A DNA stretch of 64,000 bases, from positions 67,541 through 131,540 of the forward strand of contig NW_004798040.1 of assembly GCF_000002075.1 (NCBI RefSeq), in the 5' to 3' direction. Under the pieces are notes generated by a model. That model did not search any database, had not been told where the DNA came from, and saw only the letters and a list, made by a program, of their open reading frames with translations. Numbering within the stretch: the stretch's first letter is position 1; each line of letters opens with the position of its first letter. A program made the position numbers and the translations under genes. Source of the DNA: Aplysia californica. Its lineage: Eukaryota. Shown here one piece after another: positions 6,573-63,871 of the stretch.

Positions 6573-6639
6573 ACTTGAGAGAGGCATTGCGCTGCCAAGA
6601 GCGAAATGCTCGCAGCTAAAGGGATTTGAAAACAACAAC
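6573..6639 (+). mobile_element. 5'-truncated LINE 3' end with (AAC)n tail
   Basis: 11-bp TSD ATCCTATGGCT (6562-6572 and 6640-6650); near-identical to the 3' end of the minus-strand copy at 16255-16420. Confidence 0.8.
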
Positions 6640-7153
6640 ATCCTATGGCTTTGATTGTATTGATTTGCTTCTATACATAATTTAACTCAAAACTGAAACG
6701 GATAAAACTCCTGCACTTTGTTGAGGCTAACATCTGTTCCTGACGTGAGAAGTCTGGATCATAGGGAAAGGCCTACGACCACAAGCACAGGCCCAGTTCT
6801 TGCATTCAGTCATGTGTGTTTTATGGAAATTCTAACAATTCTGCCTGTGTTATGGTGTTATGATGGATTTTAATGTTTTACTTAATGAAAGGTATGGTAA
6901 GCTGAGCTTTAAGTATGCCGTTGTGAATTTTCATTTATATTTAAAATGTTAAAGCATTATTTCTAATTTGCCATTCAGAAGTTGAAATGTTTTCTCTTGT
7001 GTAATTTGTGATAAATGTGTGACGTTTTTGGTGTAGCCTCTGAATCTGAATGTGAAGTGAAAAAATTCCCTCAAATAGATCTAGCTGTTTGTTTGTTTGT
7101 TTTCTATAGGTACTTAACAAAAGTACAGTATTGGGTTTTCCTGCCATGTCCAC

Positions 7154-7305
7154 GGGTGGCTGGAGGGTGCCACTGGAAGGTCCTCCTCCTAGTCCTAGTT
7201 TTGTTCTTTCCCTCTGTTGTTTCCGTCTGCCTGTCTGTCCCACTTTTTCCTTGTGCAACAGACCGTTATTGTTGATGTGCTTCTCTCTACACAAACAAAC
7301 AAACA
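7154..7305 (+). mobile_element. Family B short retroposon (SINE-like, about 135-150 bp)
   Basis: Head GGGTGGYTGGAGGGYGCCACTGG, pyrimidine-rich body, tail GACCGTTATTGT..GATGTGCTTCTCT..CAAAC; many dispersed copies. Confidence 0.75.
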
Positions 7306-7810
7306 GACTGACGGACTGAAACCAAAATTAGATTTATAAGAAACTTCCCACTGTTGGTAACTGTTACTGACACTGACAGCCATTTTTGCACAAAATGTGT
7401 CCTCCTGTTCACTGCTAAGTGTTCAGGGGAAAAAATGAATTGCAAAAAAAAAAACCTTAAAAAACAAACACACATCATATTTATATTTTTATGGTTGATT
7501 TTATTGTTTATGAGCATAAAACATGACAAAGAAAACAGAAACATGATGGAGTAATGGAAATGGAAACAGTATTTTATTTGAAGAAAAAAAAAATATTTAG
7601 GCCTATATTTTTAAATATATATGGCTGCTACCCTCACCTTCAGAGACAGAACCATTACCGATAAAAGGAGCTTGAAAAAGAGAAAAGAAAAGATACAGAA
7701 ACAATCAAAGGTTACAGACAACACTACATGTTTGACCCCCCCACCCCCCCTAAATATCTTTTTCCATATCTGGTAGGCGAAAATCAGGTCTTCTCTCTAT
7801 AATTATAATA

Positions 7811-8182
7811 CAGTGGAACTCGGTTTCAACGAGCTTGGATTCAACGAGAGGAGATGGATTCCCCATTTTTTTTCTTCTTTAAAATCCATAAAAATAACCC
7901 GGATTCAACAAGCACTTAAATGTGTGAGCTCGGATTCAACGGGGCTTTTTGGCCAACAATCGAGATGACACAGGCGTGCATTTGAACGAATCGGTCTTTT
8001 TTTGCGCTGCTCATAATATGCAGGCATTTCAGGTACTACTTGTTACTTCTCTTTATACATTACTTGCTCAGTGCCTGTAATTATCTACACAAAACCTCTT
8101 GTTTGCTATAATATAACGAACACTTGGATTCAACGAGATTTTAGGTCAGACCCGGCGACCTCGTTGAATCCGAGTTCCACTG
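7811..8182. mobile_element. pogo/Tigger-like (Tc1-mariner) MITE
   Basis: TIRs CAGTGGAACTCGGTTTCAACGAG / CTCGTTGAATCCGAGTTCCACTG, TA on both sides, internal GGATTCAAC repeats. Confidence 0.9.
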
Positions 8183-8528
8183 TACTCCCAAAGTCATGAT
8201 GAGTCCTCTCAACTGGGTAAACATCCCTCACTCTGGTACCGTCACTGCCACACTGTCGTGTTACATTTAGTGAGCTACATACATGAACTACAACCAAGTG
8301 CTGTGACATTACCTACGTCATACCATTATAACATCACAATTGTTTAAGTCATTTTGTGGCCAACTTTTAATTTTATTATATATATACGGTAATGAAAAAA
8401 TACCTGTTTCTTGTTGAGTATTCTCAGTATAGCGTGGTTATGTTTTATGTGCTAAAAACTGAAATATTGAGACAGTTGTCACATTTGCTCAACTCGTTTC
8501 ATAAGGTTTACTTTCGTAAACTTTTAGA

Positions 8529-8681
8529 TGGGTGGTTGGAGGATGCCACTGGACTGATAGGGCCTACTTCTTTTTTTTCCCTTTTTTTCTATATATATAT
8601 ATATATATATATACTTTGCTTCTTCCTGCACTAAATGACTGTTATTGTGTCTATGAGCTTCTCTTTACTCAAACTTTAAAC
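8529..8681 (+). mobile_element. Family B short retroposon with internal (TA)n
   Basis: Same head and tail as the 7154 and 44559 copies. Confidence 0.7.
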
Positions 8682-9115
8682 ACTGCTTTTTTAAAAAATG
8701 TTTTCGCAAAACAACAAGGAATGACTTAAGCAATTGTGTTATGACCGAGACAGTGTATTGTGCCATGGATGACTGCTGTGGCAATGTACTTTTTTTTCTC
8801 ACATTACTTACTGCCTCTTACTCTTATTGTCGGCCAGGTGTCAGATGGAACTGTCAGTGTCAGTGTTACGGCAAGACTGGCTATAGGTTATTCATAGCAG
8901 CATTCACATACATACCCCCCCCCCCTCCCACCAATGTAAATGCTTTCAAGTTGTGTGTATGGTGAGATTAGTAATGTGTATGGTTTCTTAACCCCCCCCC
9001 CCCCCCTAGAGACATAGACCTGTCTACTCCCTTTACGGTACCATACTGTGAGAAGTCTTCATATCTTTACTTTGGAAGTCAACGGTAAAAGTTTATTGTC
9101 GCATGTTAGTTGTTA

Positions 9116-9390
9116 GCCTGCAGGTCAAAAGAAAGACAGTGACAGTGTTTGCCTGCAGGTCAAAAGAAAGACAGTGACAGTGTTTGCCTGCAGGTCAAAA
9201 GAAAGACAGTGACAGTGTTTGCCTGCAGGTCAAAAGAAAGACAGTGACAGTGTTTGCCTGCAGGTCAAAAGAAAGACAGTGACAGTGTTTGCCTGCAGGT
9301 CAAAAGAAAGACAGTGACAGTGTTTGCCTGCAGGTCAAAAGAAAGACAGTGACAGTGTTAACCTGCAGGTCAAAAGAAAAACAGTGACAG
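9116..9390 (+). repeat. 35-bp minisatellite, about 8 near-perfect copies
   Basis: Unit CCTGCAGGTCAAAAGAAAGACAGTGACAGTGTTTG. Confidence 0.95.
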
Positions 9391-10191
9391 GATATAACCT
9401 TACTTCTTTTTCCCCTGCCTTTAGATTACGTACACGTAATTATTTTGGTGTGTGAAAAACTGAAATCATATTATTAAACATTTGCTATAAATTCATGAAT
9501 TGTTTTTTCTTTCTTTGTAGTTGTTTACAATTGTAATGTTTTTCATCAACACAATTTAGCAAGCTGGCTTCTCCAACCATGCCCAGCAGATAGATGGAGA
9601 AATTCCATCATATGAACTCATGTTAAACATGCAACAGAAAAGACCCTAACCCTCAATCCTTACATCACAGATGCTGGTTTTTGAAGCTGTATCTGAGGAC
9701 TGTGCTTGACTGAGGACTGTGCTTGACTGAGGACTGTGCTTGACTGAGGAGATCTAAATGTAACATTACAGAAGACAATGTGTATTTCAGTTGTTTAAAG
9801 GTCAACATCTCAATAAGAAAAGAACCATCAATATTAAGCAAATGGACAAAGCAAAGCAACCATGCCAAGATTAAGAAGACTGAAACATAATATGAAATAT
9901 TATCACTATATACAACAAAAACTTTGCTACCAAAAATATGATCTCACAACCTTGGAAGCCATCTTGTCCCTCTTCAGCACAGAACTAGTGTACTACATGT
10001 AGTAGGCTACTAGACATGATGTGATTTAAGCTGTTTATTAAGACATAGACATGATACAACAAAAACCTGATAACACAAACCTCACAGGACCAGAGATTTT
10101 GTTTGTGTCAAATAGAGTTCATGTTTTTGTGCTTGGTACTGAAAAGAAAAGAAAAGAAGGTAAAGGCAACTCCTTACTACTTTCTACTGTT

Positions 10192-10380
10192 GTGGGTGGT
10201 TGGCACGTGCACTGGTATTGCTTGCCCTTTCTTTCCTGTCAAACATCTATCTTCCTTATTTCTCTTCCTTTTCTTTGTATGTCACTCTCTAGAAGCACCT
10301 CAAATCTTTGGCAATTATAATATATCGTAAGACCTATTTGTGTTATAAAGTGCCGTAAAACTCTGACAAAAACTAAACTA
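10192..10380 (+). mobile_element. Family A short retroposon (about 175 bp)
   Basis: Head GTGGGTGGTTGGC, CTTTCCTRTCAAACATCTATC, tail AAGTGCCGTAAAACTCTGACAAAAACTAAACT. Confidence 0.75.
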
Positions 10381-10477
10381 AAGAAACCGTGTCTATCCAG
10401 ACTCACAGGGTGGCTTGTTGCTCTGGGGCAGTGAGAAGATTTGATCCCAGCTTCAATCTCTGAAGTAGGCCTACCTA

Positions 10478-10623
10478 AGTGACTGGAGGACGCCACGGTT
10501 AGGGCCTACTTCTTTTCTTTCCCTCTATTGTTTCTGTCTGTCTTGCTTCTTCCGTGCACTATAAATAAACGATTAAATGGCCGCTATTGTATCGATACGC
10601 TTCCCTCTACTCAACCTCAAACT
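10478..10623 (+). mobile_element. Family B short retroposon
   Basis: Similarity to the 44559 copy. Confidence 0.7.
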
Positions 10624-11792
10624 TACTTTCTGACAGACAGTGAGTCAGCCACAGGGCGCAGAAAGCAGGCTTGTAGTAGTCACATTTCAGGACTCGATCT
10701 GGAACTTTTCACACATGGAAGCAACTTGATCATGTGAGGCAGTAGCAACCTCTTGTCATGACAGACACAGAGAAAACCTGACTAATGGAAATGTCATGTG
10801 GATACCATGTAAATTAGATTCAAAGCGCAACACGTTTTTTTAAAGTTCTCATTAAATGTGTGTGATTTTACGCCCCCATCGACATAAGCGCAACATGCAG
10901 TACCGAAAAAGCCCACGAAAATGTTGCACAATAAGTTAAGGACAAGGGTTCTGGCATACAGGAAATGAGTCATCTCACCCAAACATACCAGTGAAAATGT
11001 GCTGCTCACAAATCAAACTCAGTCGGTCTTTGAACCACAATCAACAACACACTTCATCAAAGGTCCAATATGTTCTTCAAAACCTGGGGNNNNNNNNNNN
11101 NNNNNNNNNNNNNNNNNNNNNNNNNNNNNNNNNNNNNNNNNNNNNNNNNNNNNNNNNNNNNNNNNNNNNNNNNNNNNNNNNNNNNNNNNNNNNNNNNNNN
11201 NNNNNNNNNNNNNNNNNNNNNNNNNNNNNNNNNNNNNNNNNNNNNNNNNNNNNNNNNNNNNNNNNNNNNNNNNNNNNNNNNNNNNNNNNNNNNNNNNNNN
11301 NNNNNNNNNNNNNNNNNNNNNNNNNNNNNNNNNNNNNNNNNNNNNNNNNNNNNNNNNNNNNNNNNNNNNNNNNNNNNNNNNNNNNNNNNNNNNNNNNNNN
11401 NNNNNNNNNNNNNNNNNNNNNNNNNNNNNNNNNNNNNNNNNNNNNNNNNNNNNNNNNNNNNNNNNNNNNNNNNNNNNNNNNNNNNNNNNNNNNNNNNNNN
11501 NNNNNNNNNNNNNNNNNNNNNNNNNNNNNNNNNNNNNNNNNNNNNNNNNNNNNNNNNNNNNNNNNNNNNNNNNNNNNNNNNNNNNNNNNNNNNNNNNNNN
11601 NNNNNNNNNNNNNNNNNNNNNNNNNNNNNNNNNNNNNNNNNNNNNNNNNNNNNNNNNNNNNNNNNNNNNNNNNNNNNNNNNNNNNNNNNNNNNNNNNNNN
11701 NNNNNNNNNNNNNNNNNNNNNNNNNNNNNNNNNNNNNNNNNNNNNNNNNNNNNNNNNNNNNNNNNNNNNNNNNNNNNNNNNNNNNNNNNNNN

Positions 11793-13574: not shown

Positions 13575-14003
13575 GTCCTACTGTCACCAGTGTAGCTAAT
13601 GTCCTACTGTCACTACTATCACTACTATGTCACTGCTGACACTACTGTCACTATTCTACTGTCACTTTTGTCACTACGTCACTACTGTCAACATTGCCAC
13701 TTGTTGTCACTTTTGTCACTACGTCACTACTGTCAACATTGCCACTGTTGTCACTTTTGTCACTGTTGTAACTACTCTTACTTCTGTTACTACTGTCACT
13801 ACTGTTACTACTGTCACTACTGTTACTTCTGTCACTACTGTTACTACTGTCACTACTGTTACTTCTGTCACTTCTGTCAATACTGTCACTTCTGTTACTT
13901 CTGTCACTACTGTTACTTCTGTCAATACTGTCACTTCTGTTACTTCTGTCACTGTTGTCACTGCTGTCACTGTTTCCCCTACTTTCACTGCTGTCACTGT
14001 TGC
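13575..14003 (+). repeat. 9-bp-period minisatellite (ACTGTYACT/TCTGTYACT)
   Basis: Directly visible; produces spurious VTT/CHY ORFs. Confidence 0.9.
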
Positions 14004-14500
14004 ATTAACCATACACCTTTCCGCCCTAACCCTAGTGCGGCTGTACATCCAAGATGTCGGGGCACAGCTGGGCCAGCTCCCGAAAAGCCTTACAGGAGAG
14101 GCTTTACTTAAATTATTCTATTCCAGACAACTTCAACTCAAATTTTATGGGAATGTTTCGATACATTGAAGTGGGCAGGGACTAACATTCAAAGCGTGGC
14201 GTCAACTGCTCTCTGCCTCGTGTACCTGACAGTATAGGGAGAGAGTAAGTAAGTCAGTTTCAATACATTTTTTATTTTCTATTTGTTGAATTTTTTTCCA
14301 CCATTTATTGAGATGATGTGTTTGACCCTGCTTTACACAACAGAGTCAAAAATCAGGTTTTAAAAAGTTTTAGAGTTGGCCCACTTGCACCCTAACATCT
14401 TCGATAATACGTAACGTTCTACATCAATCCTATCCTTGTCATTGTTGCATTATGGGTTACAATTGCCGTTAGCCTCCTAAAGAAACCTTGCCGGACTGGT

Positions 14501-16541
14501 CTACTTGATGATGGTGGATATCCAGGGAAGCAGAGTGAGGCGTGAGGCCCGGTAGCAGCCGTAGGTCAGAAGGCCGATCGCCGTAAGACGGAAACCCCAT
14601 CTGGCAACTGAAGACGCCATCGACGCCGGGGGCAACCTGGCAATGATGAATGAGAAACAGGTGAGATAAAGCCAGGCGAAATTTCTTGCCTTTGTTATAT
14701 TTTTGTTATAGTTATAATAAATACTTTTACAGCACTTGCAACAAAATAAGGTCCTATAAGTGCCAAAGATTAGAGGTGTTACAAGACAGTAACAAACACA
14801 CAAAAAATAAGATAGACGTTTGATAAAAATAGAAGGAGCAAACCACACCGGAGCAGCTGCTAACTACCCACAATCTCTTGTCAGAGGTGCTGACAAAAAA
14901 CAAAATAAAACCACCAGAAATCTCTAGCCTCAGGTTTTTTGTTTTGTTTATTTGAGAAGAGAAAAGCACATCAACACAGTAACTGTCTTATGGTGCTGGA
15001 TAAAAGTATGAAGGACAAACAGAAACAACAGAAGGAGGTAAAGAAGTAGGACCTATAAGTGGGGCCCACCAATCACCTGCAGCCTCAGGTAATTTTTTTG
15101 TTTTGCGTTTCAGTAAAAAGAAAGATATGAACACAAAGATGGTCATTTAGTGCAGGAAGAGAGAAAGACAGACAGAAACAGTAGAGGGAAAGAAAAGAGG
15201 AAGGTCCTACCAAACACCTGCTCCTCATCTTATGTGACAGTAAAACACACAAAATATAGACACAGGAAATCTCTGTTTTTGTTCTAGTAGAGGTTTTACA
15301 GCGCTCGCAACTGCATAAGGTCATATGAGCGCCAGAAGATTAGAGGTGTTACAGGAGAGTAACAAACATAAAAAAAGAAGGAGGGGAGATAAGGACGATA
15401 GATGTTTGATGGGAAAGAATTTCAAAGAAGGAGCAAACCACACCAGAGCACCCACCAACCACCCATACAGGAAATCTCAGGTCTTGAGGTAACAAACACA
15501 AACATAAAGCCTGTAGACTGTATGTCACCGCAGGTCAGAGCAGCCTGCCTCTAAAATGACCTAACTTGTGTCGATGGGGCCACAAAACGTATTGCCAGCA
15601 AGCTGTTCAAATGTACAGCAACATTTTTTTTGGGGGGGAGAAAAACTGTTTTATTCTTTTAACAACTGTATCTTAACCCTTCCAGCCCCATGCATGTATA
15701 TTTTCAGCAGTGCTTGTACTTCCCACTATCCCAAGAGCGTATATTCTCAGTTTCAGGTGGTACCGAATTTGCACATTTTGTGAACCTGAATAAACTTAAA
15801 TGTTTGTTCATTTACCTTTAAACATTGTTATATAACATACTACATCAGTTTTTAGAATGCAAGCCTCTTTTCTAAAATACTGCTGTATAGGCAGGGACTG
15901 GGATTAGGGAGTGCACAAAAGTGGCTGGGGCAGGAAGGGTTAACTTGCTTTTTTCAACATTTAGACTTTGAATTTCGAGAAAACATATTTCTCTAGCACA
16001 TGCAACCAATACCCTACCTCAGATTAAGAAACTGAAATTAAAAAGATTTTGGGCAAAGTCAGTACATCTGAACAGCTGATCGACGCTACATGCAAAGCAC
16101 AGGGGTCACTCAAGACCCAACAAATGAGAGAACTGACCGGCAGATTTCCTCCACGTCCAGCTCCTTGTGCCAGTTCTCCGTGATGCCCTTCACATGACCA
16201 ATCCCCACCACGCCCACCACCACTGCTGGGACCTCGCCTGGAAAAACACAAGATGTTGTTGTTGTTGTTGTTTTCAAATCCCTTTAGCTGCGAGCATTTC
16301 GCTCTTGGCAGCGCAATGCCTCCCTCAAGTAACCACATGTCCTTGTCATCTGGTCAACGCCAGAGTAGAGCAAGCTTTGTAAGTCTGTAGGTGTGTGTAG
16401 GAGCTTGCATCGAAGAACATAACACAAGATACAACATGATAAGATAACATAACAATTTCTTGATCTCCACAAAAAGAACTTTGCTGCGACATGATCAATA
16501 CATACACACATGCACTTATCTGTTATCAACACACTCTCACA

Positions 16542-16589
<48 letters not shown>

Positions 16590-16628
16590 AATACACACAT
16601 GCACTTATCTGTTATCAACACACTCTCT

Positions 16629-16662
<34 letters not shown>

Positions 16663-18090
16663 CAAACATATACACACATGCACTTATCTGTTATCAGCAC
16701 ACTCTCTCACACACACAAACACATACACACACATGCACTTATCTGTTATCATCACACTCTCTCACACACACATACACACACACACACATGCACTTATCTG
16801 TTATCAACACACTCTTTCACACACACATACACATATATACACACACGCACTTATCTGTTATCAACACACTCTCTCACACACACAGACACATACACACACA
16901 CACTTATCTGTTATCAACACACTCTCTCACACACACAAACACATACACACATGCACTTATCTGTTATCAACACACTCTCTCACACACACAAACACATACA
17001 CACACATGCACTTATTTGTTATCAACACACTCTCTCACACACACACACACATGCACTTATCTGTTATCAACACACTCTCTCACACACACAAACACATACA
17101 CACACACACACAAAGAGTATCTGGACGGACATACAAAATAATGTTGTTCTCCCACACATCAATAGCTCATGTTGATGACAGTATGAAGTAATTTTTATAC
17201 CTGTTGGATCTTACTTAAACTTTTAACTGCTGGACCTACATAAGCTCACAAAGGACTCAAGCCTGGCAGTGGGGAGGCAAAAGGGGGAGAGGGATGTTTA
17301 GTACTGTTTTACGCCACTCGCAACTGCATAAGGTCATATGAGCAACAAGGGGTGGATGTCAACAGAGAAGTCTTTACAGGGAATCAGGCTTATTCTGCTC
17401 ACCTCTCTAACCTCAACAGCACAAAGTCTGCTTCGACTATCATCAAGGCATCCCGGAAATAGCAGTTCACCAGAGCGTGACAAACATGACAAACGAAGTA
17501 GGGGATAATTGACAATAATAAGGATGAGGAAAGAAAAAGCGGTGAAAGGGGTAGGGGAAGAAGGGATATAAGCGTGAAAGAGAGGAGAGGAGAGTGTTTA
17601 ACCTATTGAAGGAAAAGTTTCAGTGCTCTAGTTCTGTGACTGACCTCCTGGAGCCTCTGGGCAGGGCACAGGCTGCGTGGCTTTGCGGAGAGAATGTGCC
17701 AAGTAGACGTCTCGCTCGCTGACAAACACCTGGCCAAGGGCAGGGAACTCTCCGGTCATCTGCTCGATCGTCTGCTCCAGCATGTCCTTCTGTTTGCATT
17801 TCTCCACATCTTCTTTCCTGGCGGCGAAGAAAGGACGATGGAAAAATTTAGCATTTTTTAAGGGACAAGAATAAGTTAACATTTTTCAATATCTTCTGTC
17901 CTGAGGATAAATAAAGAACAAGAGAATGTTATCATTTCAGGCCTTATATCCCAGGACAATGCACGACTATCTGTATGTGAAACTGACGAATCAAAGGATA
18001 AAAAATACACAATGTGAAACCATTTAACAACAGCAACAATAACAACAACTACAACAACACACACAAACACACACACACATATATATAGGC

Positions 18091-18122
<32 letters not shown>

Positions 18123-19629
18123 ACAAATCCGAGACCTGGACAAATTCTCAACATACAAAATTACTGGCCGGGGATAATGTTGAACAAATGTGTCTTTCGC
18201 CTTTAGTTAAACTCTGTCTCTCATGTTACGATAAACGTTTCTCTTTGGAGGGAATCCCAGATCTTTTTTTGTTTTCAGCTCTCTTGAATGAACACTCTAC
18301 CTGTTGGTACAAACGTAGATCTATGGAAACGTTTCAGCATTGAAAAGGTTAAAGCAGTGTCAGTGTTGACTAAAGGACTGATTTTTCTCAAGAGACACCA
18401 TACAACTGCGAGAGGAGCAAACTCACGTGATGGGCTCTTTCGAGCAGAGGATAGCATATGCCAGTTTGAGTCTCTGCCAGAGGCTGAGGGAGGCCAGGGC
18501 TCGTCGCAGCGTGATCTGAATGGGCCGGTCGCCCAGGATAAACCGGCAGCCTCCACGCAGCTTTCTTGCCTGAGTGGGGAAAAGAGAGTTTAGTTTTAGT
18601 TAGAGTTTCACGCCACCTGTGAGACAAATAGGTCTATATTAGTGCCAAATTAGTCCTAGTAAGAGTTTTACGGCACTTGCAAAACAAAGAGGTCATATAA
18701 GTACCGAAGACTAGAGGTGTTACTAAAGAGTAACGTATAAAGAGAAGAAATAGAAATAAAGACAATAGAAGTCGGAAAGGAAAGAAAGAGCTAATCACAC
18801 CGCAGCGTCCACCAATCACCCACAGGAATAGAGAAGTGACTATTTATTTGTTCCAATATTTTTATTCAATGACTTTATCGAGACAGCTTTGTTATGTAAG
18901 TGCTACATCGTGATTTTGACTTCCTGCTTTAGACTTCCTGGGTAAAAACACTTAAATTCAAGAAAAAGCAAAGGTACCTCATTGAAGGCGGTGCGGAACT
19001 CCCCTCCGGGCGCCATTCCCAGCTCCTTGGTGATGTAGGCCGACATGTTGAGGAGGAGGATGTTGAGGACTCCTTGCATCACGCCATTCTGTAGGAAAGA
19101 TACAGAAGGTAGAGCTGGGCGAAGAATTGAATCCGGAACCGATTCCCACGATTAATGCTACGGAGGAAAAGTTCCGACTCCTTTTTACACAAACCAACGG
19201 TTACCAGCTACCTTAATTATTCAAATCTTTTCTCTTTTTTTTTCAAAATATATTTTTGAAAAATAAAAGTCGAGACTTCCTCGTGTTCCAAAATCGAGGT
19301 TATCCTAACTCCCGAAGATGTTCGGAGCCAACCAGGTAACAATCGGAAGAAATCACATCCTTGGAAAGTAAGTAATTGGGATTGGAGTCGATTCCTACGA
19401 TTCCTAGCTTTTATTTATAATCGGGAAACTAGCCGCCCAGCACTAACAGAAGGTCATTTTTACCATCATCTATCATAATGCTTCCATCTTAACCATCTCG
19501 TATAAGTATTCTTACGACCTTAGAGCATGCATCAGAATAACATTGAGAGTGTATCTAGCTTAAGATTATTATTGTTTATATTGCTGCTCATTTATATTAT
19601 GCATGTGATTGTAAGCCTGCATGTGTGTG

Positions 19630-19691
<62 letters not shown>

Positions 19692-22583
19692 CGTGTGCAT
19701 GTACACGTGGTGAAACACCATACCAATGTGCCAGGATCTGGGCAATTAAGATATATCTTATCTTATCTTATCTATTGGGGGGAGGGGAAGGGGGGGGACA
19801 TGAAAACAACAGCTTGTCCTCAACAGCATGTATTTGTTTATTTTAATTATACTTTTCCTCAACTACACAAAATACAAACGACCATAAAAAAAATAAAAAG
19901 CACAGCCCCAACACTCCGAACTGCTTGACCTGAACCAGTGCGCAATATCTAGGGTCAAGTGGAGGTTCAGTTATGTCTTACTGGAATAGTAAATGGTAGG
20001 GGCTGTGATGTGTGTGTGAGTGAGTGTTAATGAGTGTGTATGTGCGGTGTGTGTGCGCGCGCGTGTGTTAGTGTGTGCCTGCGCGTGTGTTAGTGTGTGC
20101 CTACACGTGTGCATGTGTGTGTGTCTGTGTGTGTATGTGTGAACGTNNNNNNNNNNNNNNNNNNNNNNNNNNNNNNNNNNNNNNNNNNNNNNNNNNNNNN
20201 NNNNNNNNNNNNNNNNNNNNNNNNNNNNNNNNNNNNNNNNNNNNNNNNNNNNNNNNNNNNNNNNNNNNNNNNNNNNNNNNNNNNNNNNNNNNNNNNNNNN
20301 NNNNNCCCCCCCCCCCACAGGACCAGCACCTACCCTCTGGATGAGCTGCCTGATGGTGCTCATGTTGATGTTTTTCGCCTCCTCCAAGATCCGTGCCTCG
20401 TCCATCTTGAGGATGTTCACCCTGCTCTGGCACAGCTCCACCAGGATCACGTGCGGCTTGGCCATCTGTATCACCTTTACAACACACAGAAAAAATAGCT
20501 ATCAGTATCACCTTTACAACACACAGAAAAAATAGCCATCTGTATCACCTTTACAACACACAGACAAGATAGCTATCTGTATCACCTTTACAACACACAG
20601 ACAAAACAGCCATCAGTATCAACTTTACAACACACTTACACAAAATAGCCATCTGTATCACCTTTACACCACACAGACAAAATAGCCTTCTGTATCACCC
20701 TTACCACATGAACATATAACATAGCCATCTGTATCACCTTTACAACACACTTTCACAAAATAGCCATCTGTATCACCTTGACCACATAAACATATAACAT
20801 AGTCTGCTGTATCACCTTGAAAACACACAGACTATTTAACCATTCTGATCATCTTTACAATACACAGACAAAATAACCGTCTGTAATACCTTTACCACAT
20901 TATCACAGATTAAATAGCTACCCGTATCCCCTTTAGAAACAACAGATAAAACAGCCATCTGTATCTCCTGTACAATACACAGATAAAATAGCCATCTGTA
21001 TAAAAAATCCCACATCAAAGGCCATCTGTATCGCCTCAACCATTTTAGTGTAAAATGTCATCAATCAAAACTCTACAGCCATTACTAAATTAATAAACCA
21101 GAAATAAAACTGTCAGACTTTTAAAGGTAAGATCTTTTCTTTTCATGCGGAATGTGATAAGCTGTAACAGATTTGTGGGTTAAATTACATAAAGCAAAGC
21201 AGAGATCCCTGTGGTATAGTCAGATGTGCCAAGTGGCGACTAAAAAGAAATCCTGAATTTTTCGGACCCGTAGGAACGTGTACGTAGGGACTTAAATATA
21301 TACGGATCGTATTATATAATATATCTTTTATCTTGAAGTTAGGAAAAATCTGGACAACTTCAGAAATCCATACTTCCAGATTTATCTGGAAAATCTACAT
21401 CTCTGTATAGTGTGCACTGGCCAACCAGCACCGTTTTCAAACACATCTATTTAATCACAGAGCATCAATTTCTTCTCACCCTGGCCACATCCTCCTGGCT
21501 TTCCTTGCTGAAGTGAGCGGTGCCCACCAGGTACAGCCTGCAACCGCCCCTCTCTAGCACCGTGACTGTGTCCGGCAGTTCTGACTCCGGCACTGGCATG
21601 CGAACAAGCGAAGCCGAGTCTGCCTCTGGTTCCTCGTCCGTGTAATTCTCGTCTTCGTCTTCATCTTCTGTCAACCACACATCCTCTTGATCTTTGGAAA
21701 TTTAAAGATTAATTAATGTAGGTGTTTTTACTCCCATTGACATAAAAAGATCTTTGAAAAGATAGAACAAACACTAACATTACAAAACAGAAAACACAGA
21801 AAATGTACAGGTTGGAGTACCCAGTTCAAGAATTTGAGTCAACAGAAGCAAACTGACCCAATAAATGAATTTCTTCAGAACAAACACCTTGGAATTTGTC
21901 ATAATTAACCCTTGTATCTTAACTGGAAAAATAACTGGCTTCTTAATTTTGAGTACAAGGAGTAAAGAGAAGTGAGAAGCACTACAATGCTGGAAATGGA
22001 CAAATAAACTAAAGCCGCATTTTTATCCAAACAAAATTTTTTACCAAAAGCTAAACTATGATCAGTTTTCCCCTTCTCAGTCAACAGTACAGATGAAATT
22101 GAAATTATTAGAATTTTGAATTTTAGAAAGAGAAGTTCATTTGAGGCAGTGCAGGGAAAAAGGAAGAGGCAGGCAGAAACGACACAAGGAAAGAAAAAAA
22201 GTAGGACTTACCAGAGCCACCCTCCAACCACCTGCACAAAATCATTTAATGTACCATATATTTTTTTTACCAAGCCATACATGAGTTTTAGACAATTTTC
22301 CAAGTGCGTGATGGCATTAATTAGGAAACAGAAACATCTGAGAGAAAAAAACTATGCCATCTGAGAGAAAATAGTACTAGTAATAGTACCATCCGAGAAA
22401 ACAATACCACCTGAGAGAACTCAAACCATGAGAGAAAAGCCCACCTGGATTTTCCTCATCATCCTCTTTGTTATACAAGGCGGCGCCATCTACATTATTG
22501 TTCTCCGAGTTGTCTACCACAATATGGCCACTATTGTTGTTGCTGCTGACATCATCGTCCTCCGTCCTGCTTGCTTGCGACAT
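14501..22583 (-). CDS. TRABD: TraB domain-containing protein (TRABD ortholog), 8 coding exons, about 384 aa
   Basis: Exons in gene order: 22583-22445, 21691-21480, 20474-20334, 19088-18978, 18569-18427, 17817-17645, 16237-16138, 14636-14501. All GT-AG with consistent phases (1155 nt). Motifs LYLVGTAHFSKESQEDV, LVELCQSR, ELGMAPGGEFRTAF, LGDRPIQITLRRA, VSERDVYL, VVGVVGIGHVKGI and a C-terminal hydrophobic anchor. Confidence 0.93.
14700..14871 (-). mobile_element. Family A copy in last TRABD intron
   Basis: Reverse complement of family A; tail about 60 nt upstream of acceptor 14637. Confidence 0.75.
14945..15220 (-). mobile_element. Two tandem family B copies
   Basis: Reverse complement of family B at about 14945-15078 and 15100-15220. 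Confidence 0.65.
15275..15465 (-). mobile_element. Family A copy, full length with TSD
   Basis: Flanked by ACAGGAAATCTC on both sides (about 15262 and 15467). Confidence 0.85.
15677..15939. mobile_element. piggyBac-type MITE
   Basis: TTAA-CCCTTCCAGCCCCA ... TGGGGCAGGAAGGG-TTAA. Confidence 0.75.
16255..16420 (-). mobile_element. 5'-truncated LINE 3' end (ORF2 C-terminus plus (AAC)n tail)
   Basis: 10-bp TSD AACACAAGAT (16245-16254 and 16421-16430); open frame ..PTDLQSLLYSGVDQMTRTCGYLREALRCQERNARS* ends just before the tail. Confidence 0.8.
16495..17112 (+). repeat. Compound minisatellite: CATGCACTTATCTGTTATCAACACACTCTC plus variable (CA)n, about 11 copies
   Basis: Directly visible. Confidence 0.9.
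17298..17545 (-). mobile_element. Family D retroposon (distinct body, same 3' tail as family A)
   Basis: Near-identical to 61025-61515; tail GCTCATATGACCTTATGCAGTTGCGAG..GTAAAAC. Confidence 0.8.
18587..18823 (-). mobile_element. Family A copy plus a second tail fragment directly upstream of TRABD acceptor 18570
   Basis: Gene strand reads ..CTAACTAAAACTAAACT-ctcttttccccactcag|exon. Confidence 0.75.
19110..19445. mobile_element. hAT-type MITE
   Basis: TIRs TAGAGCTGGGCG / CGCCCAGCACTA; 8-bp TSD ACAGAAGG (19102-19109 and 19446-19453). Confidence 0.88.
20461..21040 (-). repeat. About 37-bp minisatellite containing the TRABD coding-exon-3 splice acceptor
   Basis: Plus-strand unit GCCATCTGTATCACCTTTACAACACACAGAAAAAATA, about 16 copies; the first copy overlaps the exon. 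Confidence 0.9.
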
Positions 22584-27240: not shown

Positions 27241-27311
27241 ATGTCTTCTAACCTAACCCAACCTCTAGCCTGATCTCAAAGTCTAAGTTTCCTAAACTAA
27301 GCCTAAGCCTA

Positions 27312-27671: not shown

Positions 27672-33930
<6,259 letters not shown>

Positions 33931-35203: not shown

Positions 35204-35209
35204 ATTAAA
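35204..35209 (+). terminator. Candidate polyadenylation signal (ATTAAA) of NAA10
   Basis: ATTAAA preceded by a T-rich tract and followed by a GT-rich downstream element (35230-35290). Confidence 0.4.
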
Positions 35210-35360
35210 AATACTAAAAACGACGCTGACAGTTGTTTATGTTTTTGATCTGATATGTTTCGTTGTTGTGCTGTGCTGTGTGTGTTCTTTTATTTGAGTA
35301 CTTTTGAGGCATCATCATCACTCTCAGGGCTGTGGAGTTAGTTCACAAAGAAATAATGTA

Positions 35361-42300: not shown

Positions 42301-43902
42301 TTTTTTAAAAAATTTGAACAACCCCTCTAATCTTCTCCTTTTGTGTGTATGTTACTCTCTAGTAACACCTCTAATCAATTCTTTGGCACTTATTATATTA
42401 TATGATCCTATTGTTTTTGCAAGTGCCATAAAATTTTGAATAAAACTACGACGTTTTCTTTGTATTTTACTCTCTAGAAACACTTCTGATCTTCAGCACT
42501 TACAAGTTTTTTGTTTGACCTAATTATTTTGTCGTTGCAAGTGCCGCAGTAAAACTCTTACTAAAACGAAACTGTCTCCCAACAGGCCCTGGAAGTGTCT
42601 GGCTGCAGCATGACGTCAGTACCACGTGGCTGGTGGCCATCTCTGTCCGACCTCCGGTCACTGAACCTGCACAACAACGAGATAGACACGTTGACCTCTC
42701 TGCCGGAAATGACCAACCTCACCGACCTTGACCTGTCCCGCAACTTCCTGTCCGCCCTGACCCCGGGGTCACTGACCGGCCTGCCTGGGTTGACCTCTCT
42801 TAACCTTTCCCGTAACACCCTAGAGGCGGTCACACCCGGCTCGCTGTCCACTCTCCCTGCACTGACCAGACTAGACCTCAGCTGGAACTACATCAAGGAA
42901 TGGAACCCCGGCCCTCTGGCGTCTCTCCAGGTTCTGGATCTGAGCGGGAACTTGTTGACCGATCTAATGTGGTCTGAGTCCGGGCGCAGCTCTGAACTCA
43001 GGTCTGTGGATCTTTCCGAGAACGAGCTGTCTGACTTCCCGCCCGACGTCCTGGGTCTGGCCAATGTCCGAGTGGTCAGTCTAGGGAGTAACCCGCTGAC
43101 CAGCGTGCCCGGCCGGGAGATTTGTCATCACGTGACCTCGCTGTCTGAGCTGGGGCTGGAGGCGACCTTGCTTCACTGTGACTGTCGCGTGACGGCCTTG
43201 GCTCGGTGTCGGGAGAAGCTACAGGTCAGAGGTCACTGTGCCGGACCCTCTGACGTCAGCGGTCAAGCGGTGGGGCAACTCCAGGCTTGTGTGGTGACCA
43301 CTATTCCACCAACCACCACTACCGCCACCACCACCACTACTACCACAACCAGGCGGCAGGACATACTAATACAAGCGTTTTCCCGAAAAGAAGGGTTCGA
43401 ACCGCCATCCCGTGGCGACAACAGACCAGCTCAAGCGCACCAGGCCACATCTTTGTCCAGGCCAGCGAAAAATCCCTCCGCCTCCAGGTCCCAACCTGTT
43501 GCGACGTCTAGGAAACAGAACATCTCTCTGACAGGAAGTGGCAACAGCAATACTTCCATTCCCCCGCTAGTGGCAGGCAAAAACGTCCAACAAGCTGTCA
43601 CCCCCACCGTCCTGTTTCTCTCTCCGCTTCCCGTCAAACACACGGTACAGCAATCTACGACCTTCCACTTGATGTCCCCTCCCGTGTTGACCATCGTCTT
43701 GGTCCTGTTGGCAACGGTCGGCGTGACTGGAGTCCTGGCTCTGTCCGTGTGGGCTGTCCGGCGCCGCCTGACCACCGGGCACGGGGAGATTTCGTGTGGG
43801 TCTGAGGACGGGGGGCTGGGGTCAGAGAAAGACCGCTGGGCCGTGGCTGGGCCAGGCGATGAGATGAGCCGGCCTGCGGGGCTGCAGGAAAGCTCTGTCT
43901 GA
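39337..43902 (+). CDS. Type I transmembrane leucine-rich-repeat protein (signal peptide, LRRNT, LRRs, LRRCT, Thr/Ser-rich stalk, TM, short tail), about 730 aa from visible exons
   Basis: Exons 39337-39751, 40118-40449, 42018-42146, 42586-43902 splice in frame (2193 nt); extra exons could hide in the two N gaps. LRRNT CGVCSC..NCSSRNLKALP, many LxxLxLxxNxL repeats, LRRCT LHCDC..CAGP..C, poly-Thr, TM VLTIVLVLLATVGVTGVLALSVWAV followed by RRR. Confidence 0.85.
40433..41330 (+). repeat. About 54-bp minisatellite containing the LRR-gene exon-2 splice donor
   Basis: Unit approximately GTGAACGGACCTATG|GTAACTAWGGACGCTGGGTGGGTAGAGAGTAGA..; degenerates distally. Confidence 0.88.
42335..42573 (+). mobile_element. 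Two tandem 5'-truncated family A copies ending 12 nt before acceptor 42585
   Basis: ..AAGTGCCGCAGTAAAACTCTTACTAAAACGAAACT-gtctcccaacag|exon. Confidence 0.75.
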
Positions 43903-43952
43903 AACTCGGGCATTGTAAGACAAGATAATTATAATTTACATTAGATCTATAT

Positions 43953-58406: not shown

Positions 58407-60555
58407 GTAGAATGGTAGTGGAGTTGGCTGAAGCTGATGGTATATTTCTGGTGTTGGTGGTGGGGTATGCTGCCTTCTTCTGCTGCCTGATGAGTGGCTG
58501 AGTGAGTGAGTGAGTGCGTGTGAATGAGTGACGGAGGGAGGGAGGAGTGAGTGTGTGATGTGTGTACCTCACACCAGAGGGGGCAGCCACAGGCCAGCTT
58601 GCGAGACAATAAGAGCCGAGTGTGGCCAGGTTTTGGCTTGGCAGGTCCCTTTGCAAGGACTGGGTAGTATCAATATGGAAAAACCTAAACAACAAAATGA
58701 TACTAACCAGGGGTATTTGCAGTCGAGGACAAATAACCTGCCCTTCACACAAAAACAACAGGGGGGGGGGGGAAGAAGTAGGGAACTATCAGTGGCACCC
58801 TCCAACCACCCGCTATATTGCATTGTGTGGACAGGGGTGGGGGCGGGGGAAGGGATGATGATGGTGGTGGTGGTGTTGCAGGGTGGAGTAGCTCGCTGCA
58901 GCCATGGAGCTGTCAGTAAGAAACACTGATAAGCTAACACAAACCACTGACTGAGCCAAACCCTATGCCGGCCAGCTAACAAACTAAAGGGCCCATCGGG
59001 GAGCTAATGAGGGGGGGGGGTCCACATGAGCAACAAAACAAAACAAAAAAACACCAACACCGACAAAACCAAAATGTTTAAAGGTCAAAGAGCACAGGCC
59101 AAACCAACAGCTCAACAAAAAAAAACAAAAAACAAACAAGGTAACGAATGGGGGTGGGGGAATGAGGTGAGGGGAAAAACCCGTAACCCCTGAACCAGAT
59201 TCCCAGTTGGTAGACTACTATTGCTGTGGTCGTCTCGTCCTGGGTTAGGGCTAAAGGGCCAGCCACCCGTTGAGCTGTCAGTTGCTACAACAAAAATCTA
59301 CATGGTTATTCTTCCTTGAACGAGGGAGGGAGGGAGAGAGCGACCGGAGGAACGAACACACAGAATAGAAACATGGAGGAGGAGAACAACAACACACTTC
59401 CAGAAAAAAACCAAACCGCAACACACAGTGAGACAGATACACATTAGAAAACGTGACACATATAGAGAGACAGGTATACACTAGAAAACATGACACACAG
59501 ACAGGTACACAGGAGGAAACATAAAATACTTATGTATTAACACAACACACAGTGAGACAGGTACACACTAGAAAAAATGACACATAGTAAGACAGGCACA
59601 CACTAGAAAAGTGACACAGACAGGTACACAGGAGGAAACTTGACTCATTTATCTGTTGACATGACACACAGTGAGACTGGGACACATTAGAAAATATGAC
59701 ACATGGAGAGAAAAAAGACACTCTAGGAACCATGACACACAGACAGGAACACGTTAGGGAAAACACGACACACTGTGAGATAGGAACACGCTAGAAACAT
59801 GGAAAAGGTCAACACACAGCTTGTAGAAAAGAGAAAGTGACACACGTATAGGTAAAAAAACACAACACACTGAACATGTCGACACGCTGAAAAGGACCCC
59901 CCCCCAACAACATGTCGTGACGCAGGTACACACACCAGAAATACACAACACTTTGAACAAGTCGCATCTTTATCACGTGATGACACAGCTACACACCAGG
60001 ACAAAAAAACAGAACACACAACAACAAAGAAAGGACCCTCATCACGTGACATAGTGATACATGAACATTTCAGAAAAAAAACGAAACACAATAACCTGTC
60101 AACACATTAAAAAAACAAAACAAACCCACCAACAATACAGGTGACACAGGTACACACAAAAAAACCAACAACCTCACAGCACACAACACGTCAACACACA
60201 ATAATTCCCTGTAAAGAACCCCCCCCCCAAACACATAATGACACACTGCACAAAGATACTCACGCAACAACACATCAACACACAACAAAACGATGTCAAG
60301 ATAACACGCCTCCACAACACATGGTGACACATGTAGACACCAGAAAAAAATAATAAAATTTATCAGCAATGAAGAAAATACCCCACAACAACACATAGTG
60401 ACGAAAGATACAACACACTTAACACATCAACACATAGCAACAAAGGAAACACGCCACCACAACACATAGTGACCAAAGTACACACACACTGGAAAGAAAG
60501 AAACAATACACTAGAGACACGCCACTGACGACACAAGCTGCCACGACCCTCTCAC

Positions 60556-63500
60556 CTTGGAGTTCCCCATCTTGCCCGACCTGGGCCCGCCATGCCTGCG
60601 GTTATTGCGGTGGGCCTCACGGTCACACTCCAAGTCCTCCAGCCTCTGGGTGAGCGCCAGTTTTTGCTGGATGGCCATACGCAGCAGGGAGTTGAGCGTC
60701 TTCTTCTCTTCCTCCGCAGCCGACAGCTGCCGCTGCATCTCGTCGAGCTGAGTCACGTACTCGTCACAGCGCTGGGCGAACATGGCGCGGAGCGAAGCGA
60801 AGGTCGCAGCGTCCTCCTTCAGGGATTTGAGTTCGTTCCTCAGTTTCATCATGGTTTCCGTGACGATGACCTTCTCGTTCTCGTACTTCTGCTTCAGGTT
60901 GGCCAGGGCCACCTCGGCCGTCGACTTGTTGGCCTTGAGGACGGAGCGCAGCGTGGCGATCTGTTCGCGCTTGGTGGACAGCATGGCCTTCAACTTGACC
61001 ACCTGAGGAAACGCAGGAAAGATGAGTTTTAGTTTTAGTAGAGATTTTACTGCGCTCGCAACTGCATAAGGTCATATGAGCGCCAAGGGGTGGATGTCAA
61101 CAGAGAAGTCCTTACAGGGAATCAGGCTTACTCTGCTCACCTCTCTAGCCTCAACAGCACAAAGTCTGCTTCGACTATCAAGGCACCCTGGAAATAGCTA
61201 GAGGTGGGCAAAATCCGGATAATCCAGAAGGATAACCCGATAACTCTCAATGAAACTTTATCCGAATTCAGACTCTTAACTCTCAGTCCTTACTCGTTCG
61301 CCAAAGTGGGTGCACCCATTTGTTGAAGTGGTTCTAACCCATTTGCCAAAGCGGTTCATATCATATTATTAGCCGAAGAGGTGCACTAAAATATTCGGAT
61401 TTTGCTGAAGAGACTCATTGCCCAGCTCTAGAAATAGCGGGTCACAAGAGAGTGACAAACATACAACAGAAGTAGAGGTAAATGATGATAGTAAGGATGA
61501 GGAAAGAAAAAGGAGCACTTCCCTGTTGCAGTTCAGGAATAGTTATCAGCATGGCATCGCTGAATCAGCCCATTTACAATTCTACAGTGCATAAGACCCA
61601 CTCCTGCATCTCCATGGGTGCGTCACCTGGCATGTTCCCTAACCCACCGACCCACATAATTGTTCCTGCAGCTCCTATGTTCAACACCCCCTCCCCTCAC
61701 AACCTACAAACAGGTTCCTACGGCTCTTGTGTCTCTCCACACACATACACACACACCCACCCCCCACACAATCCCCCAACCCACATACCTGTTCCTGCAG
61801 CTCCTGTGTCTCCTCGAGCGTATCCCCCGGCCCGTCCCCGCTCTGCTGCCACTGCTGGGACAACTCCATCAGGTGCTCGATGGCTCCGCGCAGGAACCGA
61901 ACCTGGGGACATACACAACACACCTGGTTTTAGTCAGAGTTTTATGGCACTTGCAACACTATAAGGTCATATAAGTGCCGAAGATTAAAAGTGTTACAAG
62001 AGAGTAACAAACACAAAAAAGAAGGAGAGATAAGGACGAAAGATGTTTGATAGGAAAGAAGGAACAAACCACACCAGAGCACCCGCCAACCACCCACGAA
62101 GTTTTGTCAAAGAGAAGCACATCAACACAATTGTTATTTATTACAAGGAAATAGACAGACAGACAGAAACAACATAGGGAAAGAAACAGAGGTACCAACA
62201 GGCTACCAAAAAAACCCGAACCTTTCAGTCAGACCTCGTGGAAACCATGCACAGAATCTTAAAATAAAAGAATCATATTGTTGTCTTCATGCTATATATT
62301 TTGTATTAGGACTATTTTCATATAAAGAGCAATAAGATAATTAAAAGAGGAAAATGAAATGTATCTGTACGTGTGTGTGAGTGTATGTGCGCCCGCATGA
62401 GTATGCGCATGAAGCCATAAACATTCCACGCAAGCACCCACCTGATCCACAATGGTGTTGGAGAGAGTGCCGCAGGAAGTGGGGTCCTGCTTGGCCTCCG
62501 ATGGCGGCAGCTGGCCAGACTTGGCCGCAGACTTTGGTGTGGAGCTGGACACGGGGGCTGGGGGGACGGAGCTGGACACTTCGCCCACCGTGCCCGACTG
62601 AAACCGACAAGAGAACGTCATCATCATCAATGATTTTCTCACCCCAGATCAGGATATTGGTCATGAACAAACAACTTTCCACACTTCCCTCCACCAAGAT
62701 AACCCGAGGTCTACATATCATATCTTATTTATCTTATCCCATCTTCTCCTACCCTAGTCATATCTTATTTATCTTATCCCATCTTCTCCTACCCTAGCTA
62801 CTTCATCGTACAGAGGTGATTCAGCACTAACCTGACCTCATGGTGTTTCAAACAGACTAGGAAAAAAATCTCAAACTTTTCAGAACCTGTGAAAATGCAC
62901 ACATGAGGACTCAAAGTTTACAGACCATACTTTCGAATTCAACTCGTATCAAGATTATTTTTTATATACAGTCTGGCATCCACAGAGCAAATATATTTTC
63001 AGGCCCAGAATTGTTTCCCATGCACGTACATTCTTTGTGTCTAAAACACATACACAGCGAACTTGGTACATAACAAAAACATTGCAAAGTCCCATTAATT
63101 TTGTTTTCAGCATGTTAAGACTGCATATGGTGCAATATCTGAATAATTTCAGAAATCCGAGATTTCTGGATTTATCAAGAAAATTGGCATCTCAGGTCGT
63201 ATCTGGTCTGAAATACAGTGCAGCCTCTCTATAACGACCTTCAATATAATGACATCCTCTGTATACCGACATGGAGCCCAGGTCCCGATTTTTTTTAAAC
63301 ATAGTAAATTATCATTAGTAATATTTTTGGTTGCCTCTCTATATCGACAACTCTCTATAACCACTTTTTTTTTTCTGGTCCCGACGATGTCGTTATAGAG
63401 AGGCTGAACTTTACCTTATTCTGTCTACCCCCCCCAACAAACACGTACCTGTGACCTGTCAGCGTCGCCGGCCGGGGACACGCCCGGTGGAGAACTCTCC

Positions 63501-63640
63501 TCGCTGGGCGGCCGGTCCTCGGGCCGCACCGACCCGCTCTTGGCGTGGTCCAGCATGACACGCGAGGGCGTGTCGCCCGTCACCTGACACACCAGGTGGT
63601 ACACTTGGGCCAGCTCCTCCGTGATGCGGGTCAGCTCGCC
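60556..63640 (-). CDS. BicD: Protein bicaudal D (dynein adaptor), partial: four internal coding exons; 5' part lies beyond the window and the terminal exon is uncertain
   Basis: Exons 63640-63449, 62597-62442, 61902-61789, 61002-60556, all phase 0 and GT-AG. Conserved CC3 [88 protein letters not shown] and [19 protein letters not shown]. Confidence 0.95.
61025..61515 (-). mobile_element. Family D retroposon interrupted by a hAT MITE; tail 22 nt upstream of BicD acceptor 61003
   Basis: Matches 17298-17545 on either side of the MITE. Confidence 0.82.
61199..61430. mobile_element. hAT-type MITE
   Basis: TIRs TAGAGGTGGGCAA / TTGCCCAGCTCTA; 8-bp TSD GAAATAGC (61191-61198 and 61431-61438). Confidence 0.9.
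61927..62205 (-). mobile_element. Family B followed directly by family A; tail 24 nt upstream of BicD acceptor 61903
   Basis: A at 61927-62097, B at about 62100-62205. Confidence 0.82.
63216..63411. mobile_element. pogo/Tigger-like MITE
   Basis: TA-CAGTGCAGCCTCTCTATAACGAC / GTCGTTATAGAGAGGCTGAACTT-TA. Confidence 0.85.
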
Positions 63641-63691
63641 CTGGAAAGTCAAAGGTCATAAGGTCATTTTTTTTTTCTTTCTCTGAGAAAG

Positions 63692-63871
63692 AGTTTAGTT
63701 TTAGTAAGAGTTTTACGACACTTGCAACACAATATGGTCTTACAAGTGTCGAAGAATAGAGGTGTTACAAGAGAGCAACATACACTAAAAAGAACGAGGA
63801 GAGATAAGGATGATAGATGTTTGATAGGAAGGAAGGAGAAAACCACACCAGAGCACCCACCAACCACCCAC
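63692..63871 (-). mobile_element. Family A copy with TSD, about 50 nt upstream of BicD acceptor 63641
   Basis: Gene-strand TSD TAAACTCTTWCTCAG overlapping the element tail. Confidence 0.85.

Follow-up and report, generated by a model that had tools for sequence, protein, structure and literature searches.

Genes and strand blocks in the window

The subject of this report is the orientation of three families of short repeats, named A, B and D, relative to the genes among which they lie in a 64,000-nucleotide stretch of Aplysia californica DNA (contig NW_004798040.1, positions 67,541 to 131,540). This stretch, hereafter the window, is gene-dense animal DNA from an assembly of 927 Mb in 4,332 contigs. 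A preliminary, sequence-only reading had proposed that the repeats lie nearly always in the sense direction of their host gene. Gene strands were assigned from Pfam and PDB matches, exon by exon:

1960-4794, +, intronless open reading frame (ORF) of an AP-4 epsilon-like (AP4E-like) gene (Pfam Adaptin_N at 1906-4791, E 2.9e-60), which sets the strand for the first + block
17631-17885, -, TRABD exon (Pfam TraB_PrgY_gumN positions 171-228)
21468-21701, -, TRABD N-terminal exon (Pfam TraB positions 3-30)
30170-32900, +, NAA10 exons 2-6 (PDB NAA10 match; exon ORFs at 30.2, 30.8, 31.5, 32.0 and 32.8 kb)
39277-39777, 40087-40614 and 42565-43899, +, exons of a leucine-rich repeat (LRR) gene (Pfam LRR_8, LRRNT)
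60514-61005, -, last coding exon of BicD (Pfam BicD at 60514-61071, positions 592-717 of 718, E 3e-79)
63428-63655, -, BicD exon (Pfam BicD positions 445-488)

Because the BicD exon at 60514-61005 ends at the penultimate position of the domain and is followed by an in-frame stop, the 14 kb between 46.7 and 60.5 kb lie downstream of the recognisable BicD coding region. Pfam identified no domain in ten ORFs from this region.

Hidden Markov models (HMMs) built from the window's own copies were used to search both strands with nhmmer, with a relaxed rerun at E<=10. The search yielded about 40 A, B and D matches in four strand blocks (+ 5047-10640, - 14702-22242, + 30616-46730 and - 46728-63876), a pattern with four switches that is far from chance. 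The blocks match the strands of the AP4E-like, NAA10 and LRR genes (+) and of TRABD and BicD (-), which bears out the initial claim that orientation flips with the host gene. Relative to the assigned gene strands, 40 clusters are sense and one is antisense; merging matches within 100 nt gives 24:1. The sole antisense case arises at a block boundary, from the copy that starts at 46728. The sequence-only reading had allowed that antisense copies might have been missed by eye. The only discordant matches are three weak ones of 7-12 bits, none of them credible: a GA repeat at 1904-1938 (10.3 bits), 56001-56031 (11.5 bits) and 63712-63754 (7.3 bits).

The last switch, placed at about 46.7 kb between the convergent LRR and BicD genes, proved to be sharp. 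A + head fragment at 46698-46730 abuts the tail of a - copy beginning at 46728, and the whole 44.7-46.7 kb interval falls within a gap-free stretch (41986-54777). The window contains six assembly gaps. One of these, 11090-11792, lies inside the switch between 10.6 and 14.7 kb, so that the relative orientation of the two sides depends on the scaffold there; gene evidence is present on each side separately. No gene evidence lies within the piece 54922-57709.

The elements are listed below; all were identified with nhmmer unless otherwise indicated. Families T and C are described in the next section.

5047-5112, +, A tail fragment, downstream of the AP4E-like stop
7149-7315, +, B, downstream of the AP4E-like stop
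8515-8691, +, B, downstream of the AP4E-like stop
10188-10382, +, A, downstream of the AP4E-like stop
10463-10640, +, B, downstream of the AP4E-like stop
14702-14876 (A), 14931-15087 (B), 15084-15231 (B) and 15271-15469 (A, target-site duplication 12-14 nt), -, cluster
17280-17555, -, D with its own body and an A-type tail (E 6e-88; aligned with 61017-61529)
18587-18826, -, A tail fragment then full A, between two TRABD exons
22105-22242, -, B, upstream of the TRABD N-terminal exon (E 2e-19)
30616-30753, +, B, NAA10 intron
31287-31456, +, B, NAA10 intron
32443-32620, +, A, NAA10 intron, with its 49-nt tail unit repeated to 32718 (nhmmer; repeat family D13)
32910-33101 (A, target-site duplication), then 33121-33177 and 33179-33305 (B pieces), +, after the NAA10 exon at about 32.8 kb
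37130-37188 and 37355-37446, +, B split by family C at 37172-37343, also + (nhmmer; sequence)
37442-37625 (full A), then 37626-37784 (5'-truncated A), +
42332-42452 and 42454-42574, +, two A 3' halves, LRR intron
44547-44716, +, B, downstream of the LRR ORF (E 1e-45; target-site duplication)
46562 (start), +, T (nhmmer with T model)
46698-46730, +, head fragment of about 30 nt (sequence), with the T copy the last elements of the + block
46728-46916 (A) and 46954-46993 (B fragment), -, downstream of the BicD coding end
49921-50050 (A) and 50085-50217 (B), -, downstream of the BicD coding end
50974-51028 and 51196-51232, -, B split by family C at 51032-51196 (+)
52068-52105 (B fragment), 53395-53579 (A) and 53579-53630 (B fragment), -, downstream of the BicD coding end
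55965-56174 (B), about 57432 (T) and 58746-58817 (B fragment), -, downstream of the BicD coding end
57215-57308, +, family C
61017-61596, -, D, just upstream of a BicD exon (nhmmer; repeat cluster; sequence)
61924-62103 (A) abutting 62100-62211 (B), -, BicD intron
63692-63876, -, full A, BicD intron (target-site duplication about 14 nt)

Copies flanked on both sides by recognised exons of one gene number only about ten: those at 18587-18826 in TRABD, 30616, 31287 and 32443 in NAA10, 42332 and 42454 in LRR, and 61017, 61924, 62100 and 63692 in BicD. All are sense. About half of the copies sit past the last recognisable coding exon of a gene (5-10.6, 33-38, 44.5 and 46.7-58.8 kb), where transcription is assumed. 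The 46.7-58.8 kb "BicD territory" is to be read as DNA past the BicD coding end, not as an established BicD intron. The bias persists for kilobases past stop codons, even behind the intronless AP4E-like gene. A 7.8-kb divergent promoter region and two convergent gaps are free of copies.

The coordinates given in the sequence-only reading all correspond to matches. Two of them, 6573 and 16255, belong to a separate two-copy repeat of 73 nt (6568-6640 and 16263-16335), which lies outside families A-D; its copies are 97% identical, inverted relative to each other, and found one in a + and one in a - block. Nor were all of the copies separate events, some being fragments of a single one (the tail triplication at 32573-32719, the B copies split by C).

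Other features of the window include minisatellites at 13678-14028, 9076-9425, 20445-21027 and 40428-40860 (unit lengths 9, 35, 37-39 and 54 nt), the 54-nt array starting within the open frame of the LRR exon at 40087-40614. Two copies of family Z, a miniature inverted-repeat transposable element (MITE) of about 450 nt with inverted ends, are found at 43935-44384 and 45834-46280 (74% alike); they stand on either side of a tandem array (45035-45655; about 23 units of 27 nt) between the convergent LRR and BicD regions. ARAGORN reported a tRNA-Leu(CAG) at 42883-42973 (-), on the opposite strand of the large LRR coding exon, which is probably a false positive.

Structure and origin of the repeat families

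Families were defined by self-comparison of the window and by alignments. Family A is about 180 nt long. Its sharp 5' end begins with (G)TGGGTGGTTGG; a body rich in pyrimidines follows, and the 3' part consists of two hairpins and an ACTAAA-like tail. The first dozen bases of family B (about 140 nt) are those of A, and its tail is related to that of A. Family D (about 600 nt) combines a body of its own with an A-type tail. A de novo repeat survey of 260 kb of sampled gene DNA identified two further families, T and U, that resemble short interspersed nuclear elements (SINEs) and have tails related to those of A and B; by eye, both have B-box-like motifs. The two hairpins and the short-repeat tail are common to A, B, D, T and U. 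Family C is unrelated to A, B and D and ends in an ATT-repeat tail. It has inserted twice into B copies, splitting them (37172-37343 and 51032-51196). The tail-sharing families account for 9% or more of the sampled gene DNA.

Target-site duplications were mapped in 17 copies; they measure 10-16 nt and differ in sequence from copy to copy. Partial A copies always retain the 3' end. These two features set the polarity of the elements and confirm the head-to-tail direction adopted previously. The variable duplications and the 5' truncations with intact tail point to individual retroposition; A, B, D, T and U are thus best described, from their sequence features, as short non-autonomous retroposons with one 3' end in common, of the type found in long interspersed nuclear elements (LINEs), each copy having been inserted separately by target-primed reverse transcription. 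No partner LINE with a matching 3' tail was found. Local re-copying of tails also seems to occur: the last 49 nt of one A copy, comprising hairpin and tail, are tandemly repeated three times at 32573-32719, and contig C129 carries a tandem A pair (22334 and 22517 of the span) with the same flanking duplication.

Like SINEs, A, B and D are short, non-coding and highly repeated, and bear the marks of target-primed reverse transcription. The RNA polymerase III-type head of SINEs (tRNA, 5S, 7SL) did not turn up in A or B: Rfam returned no match even at E<=10, and ARAGORN no hit. No support emerged for deriving the head from a ribozyme or small RNA, since Rfam was empty at gathering and permissive thresholds and the fold was no better than that of shuffled sequences (z = -0.5); the predicted RNA fold is unremarkable except for the two tail hairpins. 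A tRNA origin of T and U remained unconfirmed, with no ARAGORN hit in either family and no Rfam match for the one T copy searched. Introner-like elements were rejected, as several copies lie in one existing intron or downstream of genes and no recognised exon is interrupted, and, for A and B, a MITE or other DNA transposon, as there are no terminal inverted repeats and the target duplications are not of fixed length; inverted ends are present in the unbiased family Z. The short elements contain no polyadenylation signal on either strand.

Sense bias in other genes and other families

The analysis was extended to 12 myosin genes, whose strand and span were obtained from exon matches to the myosin motor domain. 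The sample consisted of six fetched gene spans and of 3-kb loci around exons of six further genes. Sense to antisense counts of A, B and D were 39:3, 20:1, 14:0, 8:4, 3:3 and 0:0 in the six spans and 22:0 in the 3-kb loci. Pooled over the 12 genes, with E-values computed over the larger combined database, there are 104 sense and 11 antisense copies, or 74:10 when merged conservatively; the window and the myosin genes together give 144:12. All 10 genes with a majority have a sense majority; of the other two, one is tied and the other lacks copies. As a bookkeeping control, the myosin exons were all co-oriented with the assigned strands.

The bias inside transcription units is therefore about 90% sense and not absolute. 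The term "near-absolute" used at the outset fits the window, where no credible exception was found, and overstates the genome-wide situation, two myosin-XV-like genes standing at 3:3 and 8:4. In these two genes the copies favour sense slightly or not at all, and a striated-muscle-type myosin gene has no A, B, D or T copy in 16.7 kb (the three genes are loci L043-L044 on C413, L045-L046 on C596 and L047-L048 on C587). The copy-free muscle gene and the weakly biased myosin-XV-like genes suggest that the bias may depend on where or how much a gene is expressed. Evidence on whether tissue-restricted genes lack the bias is mixed: it is weak in the myosin-XV-like genes and reaches 14:0 in a myosin-VIIa-like gene.

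In the 260-kb survey, families T (19:3) and U (6:2) are also sense-biased. Other families in the same introns are not: family C stands at 7:5, the MITE with inverted ends at 8:10 and an RTE-like LINE fragment at 3:2 (tail-sharing families versus others, Fisher p = 1e-7). Family C, with only three copies in the window, had been put forward as an internal control, a role that the wider sample upholds. The bias is confined to families with a common tail. Since their bodies differ, the common factor is the tail, and hence presumably a shared mobilising machinery. Stratification by divergence, as suggested in the sequence-only reading, reveals no trend: 13/14 copies are sense at >=90% identity and 12/13 at <75%.

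Genome-wide counts

Motif counts made independently of annotation show no global strand preference. An 18-nt motif from the head of A has 26,678 forward and 26,462 reverse matches (53,140 in all; its reversed control has 0), a second A motif 6,487 and 6,470 (12,957), and a B motif 2,583 and 2,557 (5,140). Family A, with more than 50,000 copies, is thus split evenly between the genome strands. A T motif (521 matches) was too rare for a genome-wide cross-family test.

Locally, strands are correlated. Among the matches listed on two contigs (C1 and C2), which comprise 166 distinct A copies, neighbours lie on the same strand in 34 of 39 pairs (87%) less than 5 kb apart, in 70-74% at 5-20 kb and in 50% beyond 20 kb. 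The correlation length, about 20 kb, is about that of a gene. Also among the matches listed, B copies on C1 agree with the nearest A copy in 5/5 cases. Megabase-scale domains, suggested by a + run of about 2 Mb on C1 in the first motif list, were dismissed as a sampling accident, as the second motif showed many - copies within the run.

Target sites, composition and splice sites

The 17 mapped sites define the target only weakly: T-n-Y (a pyrimidine before the nick) and then an A-rich start of the duplication, with no strand-asymmetric motif. Such a site cannot yield a tenfold strand bias. Sense copies are pyrimidine-rich, with AT skews of -0.41 (A) and -0.33 (B) as compared to -0.087 in masked intron DNA. 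In the masked region downstream of BicD (46700-60513) the - strand is T-rich (AT skew -0.225); the skew is about zero in the divergent intergenic region. The former value suggests an unannotated - strand transcript or long 3' untranslated region (UTR), or else many decayed sense copies.

In two cases a sense element ends 22-30 nt before a 3' splice site: D before the last BicD coding exon (61003-61060, -), the tail of the copy at 61017-61596 ending 22 nt upstream of the site, and B before NAA10 exon 3 (30700-30775, +). This spacing puts a CTACTAAAAC or TTAACTCAAAC tail at the position expected of the branch point; the elements may serve as sources of branch sites or of pyrimidine tracts.

Origin of the bias

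We tentatively regard as most likely that the bias is set at integration and coupled to transcription or to co-directional replication, an explanation that we slightly favour over selection. The machinery of a partner LINE would nick and prime preferentially on the template strand of DNA under transcription or, in an alternative form, on the template strand of DNA that is replicated co-directionally with its transcription. New copies would then land mostly in transcribed DNA and in the sense direction. The broader proposition is of a LINE/SINE system with integration physically coupled to transcription direction (or to co-directional replication), in which template-strand priming would explain why, of insertions numbering in the tens of thousands, over 90% are sense in genes; it is conceivable and we advance it with still more reserve.

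Coupling at integration is supported by the limitation of the bias to tail-sharing families despite their differing bodies, by its recurrence in 12 other genes (104:11) and by its equal strength in every divergence class. The extension of the bias kilobases past stop codons, together with a promoter region and convergent gaps that are copy-free, and a weak target site with no strand-asymmetric motif, lend further support. Moreover, with 87% of neighbours within 5 kb of each other in agreement, randomly oriented intergenic copies can hardly be numerous; a large pool of them is what uniform insertion combined with selection in genes would predict.

Several points weigh against this explanation. 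The observed bias may also stem from rapid purging rather than from insertion itself. The intergenic fraction of the genome is an estimate, not a measurement, and intergenic DNA was sampled over about 12 kb of one window; promoters are protected by selection as well. Two myosin-XV-like genes combine many copies with little bias, which the model accommodates only on the condition that they are not expressed in germ-line cells. Finally, we know of no LINE with such a coupling to transcription, and de novo L1 insertions in human cells are reported to show no bias relative to transcription.

Selection after insertion is a serious contender that we consider somewhat less probable. Copies would insert in both directions, and antisense copies in transcribed regions would be harmful and removed before fixation in a very large population: their antisense strand is purine-rich, has GTAAG motifs resembling 5' splice sites and would base-pair with sense copies, which are numerous in the same pre-mRNA. 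Selection is the accepted cause of orientation bias in other genomes (PMC2911107, PMC3517506). Sense copies are pyrimidine-rich like introns and are tolerated directly beside 3' splice sites, both as expected from this scheme, and the two weakly biased genes could reflect weaker constraint. The absence of a trend among age classes does not separate the two models, because purging before fixation likewise predicts equal bias in fixed copies of all ages. The demands made on selection are considerable, however: about 8/9 of antisense insertions must be eliminated, over five families with differing bodies and without a common splice signal in their antisense tails, whereas unrelated families in the same introns are unbiased. 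Neither the persistence of the bias for kilobases beyond the stop codon, with an intronless gene among the cases, nor the scarcity of randomly oriented intergenic copies that neighbour agreement implies genome-wide is readily accommodated.

Two further explanations appear very unlikely. If only inverted neighbours were avoided, close inverted copies being unstable as DNA or harmful as double-stranded RNA, regions would drift to one orientation with no preference for sense. The density of copies (about one per 1-2 kb), the strong short-range agreement between neighbours and the many copies abutting head to tail are in line with this scheme. It predicts blocks that are sense or antisense at random, yet all four domain-supported window genes, the block downstream of the AP4E-like gene and all 10 majority genes are sense; furthermore, close inverted pairs exist and are tolerated, in contig C587 and on C1 and C2. 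The constant sign contradicts inverted-neighbour avoidance as sole cause, and it could act as an amplifier of a weaker primary bias. The other explanation, to which we attach equally little weight, is that the endonuclease site is commoner on one strand of transcribed DNA, the sense strands of introns being T-rich. Masked introns do have more T than A on the sense strand, and the TT/AAAA preference of L1 may contribute to its antisense bias. Here the sites are too weakly defined, their reverse complement being similar in composition; a compositional skew of 9% cannot make a tenfold bias, and an A-rich target on the element's own strand would predict antisense, not sense, insertion. An artefact of non-independent copies (segmental or tandem duplication, composites) or of mis-oriented scaffold pieces is largely excluded: some matches are indeed fragments of one event (the tail triplication, the split B, tandem pairs) and the window has its gaps, but target-site duplications differ between copies, merging within 100 nt still leaves 74:10 outside the window and 24:1 inside, a flipped scaffold piece would turn gene and elements together, and coding exons, as internal control, are all co-oriented with the assigned gene strands.

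Significance and comparison with known systems

Mobile elements in genes normally show a modest antisense bias, which is taken as a sign of selection. This picture does not accommodate a tenfold preference for sense in several abundant families with one type of tail. Either LINE machinery has a hitherto undescribed property, in that transcription steers retrotransposition, or selection acts on the content of introns with exceptional efficiency in this lineage. The strongly T-rich elements may be responsible for a good part of the strand asymmetry in introns; if integration is indeed coupled, the T-rich skew of intron sense strands would be largely a side effect of these elements. On the practical side, the strand of the elements predicts the transcribed strand of unannotated regions, an aid to annotation and to assigning strand to long 3' regions and non-coding transcripts. 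This use was anticipated in the sequence-only reading, and the prediction was right in every informative gene examined.

Published surveys of mammals, chicken, zebrafish, fly, worm and Ciona describe antisense bias or none (PMC2911107; PMC3517506; PMC3088655), and our literature search retrieved no report of a sense bias of this kind. Intronic L1 and long terminal repeat (LTR) elements of vertebrates and fly likewise show a retroelement strand bias relative to the host gene, measured alike. It is antisense there; here it is sense, about 10:1 and much larger, and concerns short non-coding elements. The 104:11 ratio thus agrees with the original assertion of a bias opposite to, and far stronger than, that of mammals.

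Gastropod and bivalve SINEs are modular, with head, body and LINE-derived tail (PMC4758252), and bivalve HCD-SINEs accumulate in genic regions (PMC11481361). A, B and D are like these mollusc SINEs in their swapped bodies, common LINE-type tails, high abundance and enrichment in genes. They differ in that A and B have no recognisable tRNA, 5S or 7SL head; orientation relative to genes was not analysed in PMC4758252 or PMC11481361. R2 and R1 in rDNA (ribosomal DNA), as well as intronic small nucleolar RNA (snoRNA) retroposons (PMC1687206), are also sense in the host transcript and may rely on host transcription for expression. The orientation of R2 and R1 follows from a single specific target sequence, whereas the elements described here have variable targets; no ribozyme or snoRNA signature was found in them.

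L1 integration, finally, is reported to have a replication-strand preference, modest and tied to fork direction. It offers a precedent for a strand choice at integration that depends on a DNA transaction and not on the sequence of the target. The L1 preference is not tied to transcription, whereas in the present case the blocks switch at gene boundaries 10-20 kb apart.

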